From positions 124,001 to 188,000 of the forward strand of contig NIVC01000800.1 in the NCBI GenBank assembly GCA_002269645.1: a DNA stretch of 64,000 bases, in the 5' to 3' direction. The stretch is from Macrostomum lignano. Taxonomy: Eukaryota. This document shows positions 59,015 through 60,238 of the stretch, piece after piece. The position numbers and the translations under genes were made by a program. The notes beneath the pieces were generated by a model. That model saw only the letters and a program-made list of their open reading frames with translations, was not told the origin of the DNA and ran no database searches. The stretch's first letter is position 1. Each line of letters begins with the position of its first letter.

Positions 59015-60238
59015 TCACGCCATCACCAATGCAGTTCCGTTCGCAGTCCCGAATCCAGCGCAGCCCCCCGTGGCCAGATAAAATCCGGCCTCCGCTCCCC
59101 CTTCACAGACGCCACCGCCCGCCCTGTCCTTGGCAAACGCATCGAGCCCCTTCTCAACCTTGGTGAACTCAGCCCGCGTCACCCGCCTGACGGTCGCCGA
59201 CCCGGAAGTGACCAGCTGCTGGCTGAAGACAGCCTTCCTCGGCCGCAGGTAGCCGGCTGCTGACTGCCACCTTGCGAAATCCTCAACAAACGAGGAGAAC
59301 TCGGTCACAGGCGGGCCCGGGCACAGCCGCCTGTACTCAGCCAGAAAGTGGCGCACGCCATTGCACTCGAGATAACAGCCGCAGGTCCAGCAGGACTCGC
59401 CGCCACGGTGGCGGTTGAACTCCACCCTGAATGTCGCTGGCCGACCCTCCGTCCAGTTGACGTCGAGCATGGACTTCAAGCCGTCGCCTTCGCCGGCAAA
59501 TCGACTAACGATAACGTCAGGACCGCTGGCGACCTTCTCGACTTCACCGGCACTACCGCTGCCGTTCCACACCGAGAAAATGGCAACCCGCTTCCCATCG
59601 CAGAGCTGCTGCAGTCCGCAGTAGCCGCCGAGGCCTTGCCAGCACAGTGCGCAGAAGTAAGAGCCGTCTGAGCAGTCTTGCACCGTCACCGAGCACTCCA
59701 GTGTCAGGCGGTCAGACTTGACCTCTTCGGCAGTCAGCTGGCCGTATCTCAAGTGGCAGGACGCGGCAGGCCTTGACCCAGCCTCGGTGCAACACCAGCA
59801 GCTCCATAGCAGATTGTCGTCAGCCGGAGCCGCTCTGCTCAGGACCAGCCTGTCAGGGTTGTTGGCGTCCTGGGCCAGGGCGAAGCCACCGTCGGCGGTC
59901 AGAATCCGACCATCATGGCTGTCAAATCGGAAGGTCGCAGCGGCAGCAGCAGCGCTAGACGAGTCCGTCCTCACCAGCACAATGGGACTGCCGTGGGCCA
60001 GTGGCGCGGCTTCAACTCCGAGGCAGAAGCGGCTGTCCAGAACCGAGACAATTCTTTTAGTAGCAGAATTGCTGCCGCTGGACTGCAGCAGCCACTGCTG
60101 GTTCGGGCCGCCATGCTGGTGCTGGTACAGACCCACCGGCCTGCCCTCCGACACGACGCTCTCGAAGATGTCAATCACTTTATTGGAGCGCCGGTGGCTC
60201 AGCATGAACACGCGTGCAGAGTTGTCGGATAAAAGCAT
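59015..60238 (-). CDS. Ricin-B-type (beta-trefoil) lectin fused to a DUF3472-like domain, single open exon
   Basis: First in-frame ATG at 60238. SNKVIDI...GGPNQQW and DNLLW ricin repeats; then [16 protein letters not shown]...AIFSVW...FAGEGDG...WTEG...SSFVEDF...FYLATGG, recalled DUF3472 motifs. Confidence 0.75.

Follow-up and report, generated by a model that had tools for sequence, protein, structure and literature searches.

Does a lectin–DUF3472 gene in the flatworm Macrostomum lignano represent a toxin-like effector captured from bacteria, or an enzyme of animals themselves? The gene occupies positions 59015-60238 of a 64,000-nucleotide stretch of contig NIVC01000800.1 (positions 124,001 to 188,000, forward strand), which we refer to as the window. 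An earlier analysis made from the letters alone, here the sequence-only reading, had proposed an intronless fusion of a ricin-B lectin to a DUF3472-like domain, horizontally acquired and serving as a glycan-targeted effector. We find that the gene adds a new and uncharacterised member to the DUF3472 family, the family of the di-glutamate mucinase HC7, and that it carries a carbohydrate-binding module. With confidence a little above even, we read its product as a lectin-guided hydrolase or glycopeptidase, in which a ricin-B trefoil joined to an HC7-type DUF3472 domain follows the design of a carbohydrate-binding module (CBM) plus enzyme, in a leaderless protein of a patchy animal clade.

The coding sequence is complete and intronless. 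It comprises 407 codons plus a stop on the minus strand (59015..60238), from an ATG at 60238 to a TGA at 59017-59015, and the same span is NIVC01000800.1:183015-184238 in the M. lignano assembly GCA_002269645.1 (Mlig_3_7). The frame is unbroken, as the sequence-only reading had said of this open reading frame (ORF), and the strand can now be given as minus. An alternative longer frame opens from a TTG at 60292, and homologs give no support for a longer start.

The C-terminal part of the protein (aa 150-393; 59060..59791, minus strand) forms a DUF3472 beta-sandwich, as assigned by Pfam, a PDB profile search and Foldseek. In Pfam it matches PF11958 ('BPSS1860') with E=5.2e-51 and 174.3 bits against a cut-off of 24.8, over profile positions 5-241 of 269; an NCBIfam scan of the protein returned no match. 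The five motifs on which the earlier domain call had been built are all present (GYCGLQ at aa 205-210, FSVW at 221-224, FAGEGDG at 247-253, SFVEDF at 316-321 and FYLATGG at 386-392), and with a Pfam match far beyond chance the call holds. The flatworm protein departs from none of the columns that are invariant in an alignment of 42 sequences, the key columns having also been checked across 130 domains; the family-invariant residues are S160, H162, Y206, Q210, S222, W224, E250, G251, W262, S316-D320, R323, T390 and G391. This part of the AlphaFold2 model has a predicted local distance difference test (pLDDT) score above 90.

Structural comparison places the domain beside a characterised enzyme, and the flatworm domain is homologous both to that enzyme and to the top structural match, 4qhw (BACCAC_02064 of Bacteroides caccae), which is found with E=6e-18 by Foldseek and 8.5e-54 in the PDB profile search. 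The HC7 structures 8pmu, 8pn3 and 8pn5 are matched by Foldseek with E=1.7e-13 to 8e-13 and template modelling (TM) scores of 0.55-0.58 normalised to the target, and superpose on the flatworm model with a root-mean-square deviation (RMSD) of 3.5-4.0 Å over about 265 columns; 8pmu is also recovered by the PDB profile search at E=2.4e-11, using a profile of 42 family members. These entries bear the titles 'HC7 apo form' and 'HC7-Glu200Ala mutant complexed to a tri/tetraglycopeptide', with the molecule name 'DUF3472 domain-containing protein'. Among more distant fold matches, Foldseek lists eqolisin glutamic peptidases (2ifr, 1s2b), polysaccharide lyases (PL14 alginate lyase, ulvan lyase), galectins and GH43 accessory domains.

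DUF3472 had been called uncharacterised in the sequence-only reading, a description now outdated: the di-glutamate mucinase HC7 (PDB 8pmu/8pn3/8pn5; Narimatsu et al., Nat Catal 2024, as cited in PMC13003899) has DUF3472 as its catalytic domain. HC7 is a Bacillus cereus enzyme that cleaves Tn/T O-glycosylated mucins, reported under a title stating that the family 'bridges glycan hydrolases and peptidases'. PMC13003899, a 2026 paper from the same group, gives HC7 a length of 659 aa, describes it as cleaving the protein backbone and reports that its CBM5 modulates activity.

The sole difference between 8pmu (LFQEDW) and 8pn3 (LFQADW) falls in the family's SFVEDF column, which equates HC7 Glu200, replaced by Ala in the complexes of HC7 with substrate, with flatworm E319 (codon 59282..59284, minus strand). 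E250 of the FAGEGDG motif (codon 59489..59491, minus strand) aligns with HC7 Glu131 (FGGEGTG) and is, from the alignment, the putative partner of E319 in the catalytic pair. Each of the two columns holds Glu in 129 of the 130 DUF3472 domains compared, which suggests selection on the active site.

The N-terminal part (aa 10-149; 59792..60211, minus strand) is an R-type (ricin-B, CBM13-like) beta-trefoil of 12 beta-strands, as the sequence-only reading had also recognised. Pfam evidence for it is slender: PF14200 (RicinB_lectin_2) passes narrowly with 28.2 bits against a gathering cut-off of 25.6, and PF00652 scores 23.7 bits, under its cut-off of 29. The designed lectin ThreeFoil matches this domain with E=2.9e-8. 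With N-terminal homologs in its input alignment, an AlphaFold2 model (mean pLDDT 86, predicted TM score 0.79) shows the 12 strands within aa 11-149, at pLDDT about 80-88; it supersedes a first model built without such homologs, in which the trefoil lay below 40 and was effectively unmodelled. Foldseek then returns trefoil lectins, GalNAc-binding trefoils among them: 7qe4 (Salpingoeca lectin), 5xg5 (Mitsuba-1; TM 0.69), 2y9f (LSL N-terminal domain; TM 0.67), 3kmv (TM 0.70), CBM42, the lectin domain of GalNAc-T1 (8v9q, 1xhb) and the Marasmius oreades agglutinin MOA (5mu9).

The alignment to ThreeFoil identifies N46-Q47-Q48-W49 (60092..60103, minus strand), in the alpha repeat, as the one QxW motif that is intact in the trefoil. 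QQW (aa 47-49) is accompanied by D23, Y38 and N46 in repeat 1 only; repeat 2 ends in TFRF and repeat 3 in LLW. Residues D23, Y38, N46, Q47 and W49 form what we take to be the classical ricin-B sugar-site pattern. Because repeats 2 and 3 are degenerate and repeat 1 alone keeps this pattern, the lectin probably has a single working site of the Gal/GalNAc type, in its first repeat.

Relatives were collected with a HMMER search of 1.84 billion cluster representatives, which gave 559 at E<=1e-3, 16 of them below 1e-30. After the copies from M. lignano itself, the best matches are proteins of 240-440 aa that lack a signal peptide. Two-domain matches are common among these best relatives (P0045, P0046, P0048, P0049, P0052 and P0057; 35-46% identity); their N-terminal parts match ricin-B models and are also recovered when the flatworm trefoil alone is the query. 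A further profile search, of a word-indexed protein set, contributed little apart from one additional M. lignano model. The two-domain relatives that carry a species label come from the copepods Lepeophtheirus salmonis and Caligus rogercresseyi, and labelled relatives with DUF3472 only come from the cnidarian Hydractinia symbiolongicarpus and the echinoderm Holothuria leucospilota. P0057 lies on a 37.7-kb contig of GCA_029979625.1 whose eIF2D is closest to that of the copepod Tigriopus (50%), followed by other crustaceans. At the locus of P0046 (L006), a canonical 54-nt GT…AG intron with a polypyrimidine tract (2195-2248) interrupts the DUF3472 domain, and its removal restores …TLR|RCAEF… and the full-length protein.

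Side observations at two relatives' loci concern their neighbours. An APH-family kinase gene stands directly upstream of the lectin–DUF3472 gene, on the same strand, on the copepod-like contig L004 (8537-9463) and on a metagenomic contig, L005 (4734-5801); this micro-synteny is absent at the flatworm locus. L004 also encodes a Mago-binding protein (PF09282; 5940-6836) a few genes upstream of the DUF3472 homolog. Mago nashi lies beside the flatworm gene, and the resemblance is probably coincidence.

In a neighbour-joining tree of 130 domains, a distance tree from which centipede sequences were left out, the flatworm sequence is sister to 25 leaderless proteins with 56% bootstrap; most members of this clade are unlabelled proteins derived from metagenomes or the Sequence Read Archive (SRA). 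An 8-column deletion after FSVWN is found in 21 of 26 clade members as against 3 of 99 other sequences, and the flatworm protein has six of the eight signature residues of the clade. Just outside the clade stand archaeal proteins of the Poseidoniales (Marine Group II), which share a 7-8-residue deletion and some of the signatures. One of their clusters, P0063 (DAC35950.1, MBM73503.1), has no signal peptides and holds the prokaryotic proteins closest to the animal clade. By tree and alignment, then, the gene is part of an animal clade of patchy distribution that spans a cnidarian, an echinoderm, copepods and a flatworm, and in which the lectin fusion was already present.

Members of this clade also share the lack of a leader. 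No signal peptide is found in the 407-aa ORF, whose N-terminus is without a hydrophobic segment, in agreement with the sequence-only reading. By a crude heuristic, about 24 of the 25 clade relatives likewise have none, as against about 78% signal-like N-termini among other family members. In at least ten homologs the start lies only a few residues from the same initial beta-strand, so the leaderless state is a feature of the clade and not an accident of the gene model. Since the flatworm protein and nearly all of its animal relatives lack a secretion signal, the protein probably sits in the cytoplasm, and a cytoplasmic store with unconventional release would be the oddest aspect of the family.

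A lectin-guided hydrolase would act in steps. The trefoil would dock on O-linked glycans of the GalNAc/Gal type, and the DUF3472 domain would then cut the glycoprotein, most likely at the peptide backbone next to the O-glycan, as HC7 does. From the cytoplasm, the protein would reach its substrates by unconventional release, by cell lysis or where glycans become exposed to the cytosol. We consider this the most likely mechanism because E319, the equivalent of HC7 Glu200, and the invariant E250 are both kept.

Several points weigh against this assignment. Identity to HC7 is only 17-18%, and both the substrate range of the family and its second catalytic glutamate are themselves putative. The closest structure, 4qhw, is labelled only as a 'putative sugar hydrolase', and the protein after which newer Pfam releases name the family, BPSS1860 of Burkholderia pseudomallei, is described as an adhesin, not an enzyme (PMC7998038). 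Repeats 2 and 3 of the trefoil are without sugar-site residues. The substrates known for such an enzyme, mucins, lie outside the cell, which makes the cytosol an odd place for it, and an upstream exon may encode a signal peptide. The clade itself has modest bootstrap support (56%) and consists largely of the unlabelled metagenomic or SRA-derived proteins mentioned above.

The distant fold matches bear on the chemistry of the reaction. Polysaccharide lyases (PL14 alginate lyase, ulvan lyase) and GH43 accessory domains are among them, 4qhw, the best match in both structure and sequence, was deposited as a 'putative two-domain sugar hydrolase', and the title of the HC7 paper sets the family between glycan hydrolases and peptidases. 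The same architecture could thus attack the sugar chain instead of the peptide, which would make the protein a lectin-guided glycoside hydrolase or lyase, an outcome we hold unlikely but give a real share of probability. Glutamic peptidases also occur among the fold matches, however, the annotation of 4qhw is a structural-genomics guess, and HC7, the sole biochemically characterised member found, is described as a backbone-cleaving mucinase.

That the DUF3472 domain only binds its ligand, making the protein a non-catalytic double glycan-binding lectin or adhesin, is quite unlikely. BPSS1860 was characterised as a surface attachment factor (PMC7998038) and has been proposed to act in this way, and the sandwich fold is concanavalin- or galectin-like, with galectins among the distant matches. 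An attachment phenotype is compatible with enzymatic activity, however, and a domain that only binds sits poorly with the near-complete retention of both glutamates, one of which was mutated in HC7 to trap the substrate.

We then asked where the gene came from. The family is overwhelmingly prokaryotic and, as the sequence-only reading had supposed, mostly bacterial: in a scan of 185,579 prokaryotic species (one genome each), relatives fall mainly in Verrucomicrobiota, Planctomycetota and Kiritimatiellia. These matches reach at most 35% identity, over the DUF3472 part only, in proteins of about 280 aa with signal peptides. In the HMMER search the best labelled animal match (E=2e-37) beats the best labelled prokaryotic one (3e-27), and by the logic of an 'alien index' the gene is not alien. 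Undheim and Jenner (2021, PMC7864903) concluded that DUF3472 passed from bacteria into animals on more than one occasion, centipedes included. An ancient transfer of DUF3472 into animals is plausible, and any prokaryotic transfer would be ancient and not recent in the flatworm, because the gene belongs to a patchy clade of several animal phyla. Homologs in other animals (Hydractinia, Holothuria, copepods), which the sequence-only reading had taken, together with a vertical tree, to speak against transfer, do exist, which bears out that objection in part. A viral vector was considered and is not supported: a scan of a viral contig collection contained no relative, and in BFVD only a DUF3472 protein of Vesanto virus was found, at 12% identity.

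The idea from which this study started, a recently acquired bacterial gene that serves the flatworm as an AB-toxin-like effector against glycans, is very unlikely in the light of these relatives. It draws on the mostly prokaryotic distribution of DUF3472, the intronless gene, the DUF3472 proteins of centipede venom inferred to be bacterial in origin (PMC7864903), and the precedent of the mushroom chimerolectin MOA, a lectin joined to a protease whose trefoil is a fold match here. Against it, animal proteins that carry the same fusion stand nearest to the flatworm protein (35-46% identity), the bacterial and labelled prokaryotic matches are weaker and confined to DUF3472 as given above, and codon usage is host-like, with a GC content at third codon positions (GC3) of 0.74 and relative synonymous codon usage (RSCU) correlated at r=0.69-0.79 with Mago nashi and a G-protein-coupled receptor (GPCR) of the window. 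A flatworm-specific or recent acquisition is accordingly not borne out. Of the proposed AB-toxin layout, the pairing of a binding module with a putative active module stands. The toxin identity does not: a Pfam scan of the protein detected no toxin domain, the partner of the trefoil being DUF3472, and the comparison is superficial because there is no toxin A-chain fold, only one trefoil, where type II ribosome-inactivating proteins have a double-trefoil B chain and arise from a secreted precursor, and no secretion signal. A mostly bacterial domain in an intronless gene is, by itself, no sign of recent horizontal transfer.

This is an authentic nuclear gene of M. lignano with an intact ORF. Its contig measures 318,709 bp, and the gene sits between a large VWFA/Cache gene (calcium-channel alpha2delta-like) and an intronless Mago nashi (56595..57053, minus strand), its downstream neighbour. 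Four older M. lignano models in UniProt (P0002, P0044, P0207 and P0062) are frame-shifted, run-on chimeras that fuse the lectin–DUF3472 gene to the upstream alpha2delta-like gene, to the downstream Mago nashi, or to both. The order alpha2delta-like / lectin–DUF3472 / Mago nashi is repeated in several independent models, and the joining of the same neighbours in these run-on models indicates that this order is present at several loci or haplotypes of a duplicated genome. P0062 was considered as a divergent M. lignano paralog and rejected: it contains a Mago nashi fragment and is another run-on model of the same locus type. Proteins of M. lignano are already in UniProt under automatic names; judged by their titles, papers on Macrostomum lignano and ricin deal with lectin staining, adhesion or unrelated matters, and none has this gene as its evident subject.

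A contaminant, an assembly artefact or a dead pseudogene, which satellites on both flanks and the chimeric older models might suggest, is a negligible prospect for an intact ORF that keeps all family-invariant residues and host-like codons on a 318.7-kb contig with host genes on either side, in a gene order found in several independent models. On this the sequence-only reading was right in each respect: codons like those of the host, a setting among eukaryotic genes and satellites (Mago nashi, the GPCR, a copia retrotransposon and two 20-bp satellites), and contamination judged unlikely.

The borders of the gene are formed by these two satellites. On the 5′ side, 55 copies of a 20-bp unit (GGACAAGGCAGATGGGGAGA; 60323..61429) begin 85 bp before the ATG and are pyrimidine-rich on the coding strand of the gene. 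On the 3′ side, 59 copies of another 20-bp unit (CTCTAGTGCTCACAATCTCA; 57826..58997) begin 18 bp past the stop and separate the gene from Mago nashi. Between the upstream satellite and the ATG lies the short upstream ORF (MQPHVAVS plus stop; 60241..60267, minus strand) that had been noted before; its start context is strong (accATG), and its stop indeed ends 2 nt upstream of the main ATG. A cluster of AG dinucleotides (ctAGctctAGtctAGcAGcaacAG; 60297..60316, minus strand) directly follows the CT-rich satellite, and an in-frame TAG at 60311-60313 falls inside this region. Coming after a long CT-rich tract, the cluster (about 60297-60316) is a possible cis- or trans-splice acceptor, a candidate read from sequence only.

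The rest of the window is crowded with mini- and microsatellites (42018-47269, 2231-4909, 9706-11657, 16143-17330, 40509-41192 and 48310-48766). One of them is a CT-rich array of 5.2 kb, built from a unit of 10-12 bp, whose extremely strand-skewed sequence gives rise to an artefactual ORF of 1805 aa (41900-47317); a 145-bp satellite occurs twice. An ORF pair recurs three times (1345-2205, 8820-9680, 15568-17640) at a spacing of about 7.47 kb, each time followed by the same 21-bp and 145-bp satellites, and represents a tandem segmental duplication; a Pfam scan of these ORFs gave no match. A copia-type long terminal repeat retrotransposon (31523-35537, plus strand) is encoded in two overlapping frames, one for Gag, protease and integrase (31523-33364) and one for reverse transcriptase (33255-35537). 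It is followed by the GPCR, an intronless rhodopsin-family ORF (7tm_1, E=2e-10; 35980-37122, plus strand), and then by a GA-rich 29-bp satellite (37178-37999). A FAD_binding_2 ORF resembling the flavoprotein of succinate dehydrogenase/fumarate reductase (E=4e-56; 18974-19681, minus strand) has a GC3 of only 0.42, as against 0.74-0.89 in other host genes of the window, and a codon usage unlike theirs.

Possibly, though we hold this less likely than not, at least four animal phyla (Cnidaria, Echinodermata, Arthropoda/Copepoda and Platyhelminthes) encode active, leaderless di-glutamate glycopeptidases, often fused to a GalNAc-type lectin, which would be endogenous, cytoplasm-stored cleavers of mucins and other O-glycoproteins. 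Such enzymes might serve in defence, in the digestion of prey or mucus, or in the surveillance of glycans exposed to the cytosol. If active, they would extend a newly recognised catalytic class, that of HC7, characterised so far only in a bacterium, by a branch encoded in animals, and the role of an O-glycoprotein-cleaving enzyme that has no secretion signal would call for an explanation. Glycoproteomics prizes mucin-cleaving enzymes as tools, and in the literature consulted these have come mainly from mucus-associated bacteria. M. lignano is a laboratory model with RNA interference and transgenesis, in which the function of the gene is directly testable.

Among known systems, HC7 offers a close parallel. 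Both proteins have the catalytic beta-sandwich of DUF3472, with E319 and E250 of the flatworm protein in the places of Glu200 and Glu131, and both join the enzyme, in the flatworm a predicted one, to a carbohydrate-binding module. HC7 is bacterial and has a CBM5 as its accessory module (PMC13003899); the flatworm protein has instead an N-terminal ricin-B trefoil, belongs to an animal host, is leaderless, and has an activity that is predicted only. The closest structure and bacterial sequences are BACCAC_02064 (4qhw) and the secreted DUF3472 proteins (~280 aa) of Verrucomicrobiota and Planctomycetota, which share 23-35% identity, the same motifs and both glutamates. They differ in having signal peptides, in having no extra domain or a different N-terminal one, and in an 8-residue insertion after FSVW that the animal clade does not have.

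For the trefoil, the lectin domain of the GalNAc-transferases (GalNAc-T1; 8v9q, 1xhb) provides a model, a single ricin-B trefoil on an enzyme of mucin-type O-glycopeptides, with an RMSD of 3.2 Å over about 139 columns. In the transferases, however, the trefoil is C-terminal to a glycosyltransferase, and the likeness is limited to the targeting module. MOA (5mu9) shares the order of modules, with an N-terminal ricin-B trefoil before a hydrolytic domain, and its trefoil is matched by Foldseek at E=8.5e-4. We regard the resemblance of the two proteins as analogy, not homology. The catalytic domain of MOA is a papain-like cysteine protease unrelated to DUF3472, and MOA, too, is not known to carry a signal peptide.

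Within animals, the DUF3472 proteins of centipede venom (PMC7864903) are likewise family members, read there as the product of bacterial transfer. Many of them carry an N-terminal DUF5077, they occur in venom and their genes contain introns, whereas the flatworm protein has a ricin-B domain and no leader, and its gene no intron. Nearer at hand are the uncharacterised proteins of Lepeophtheirus salmonis (XP_040579021.1), Hydractinia symbiolongicarpus (XP_057311418.1) and Holothuria leucospilota (KAJ8026848.1), which fall in the same clade at 31-46% identity to the flatworm protein and share its deletion, its signature residues and its leaderless N-terminus. The lectin domain is missing from the Hydractinia and Holothuria forms, and the copepod forms bear the trefoil as the flatworm protein does.

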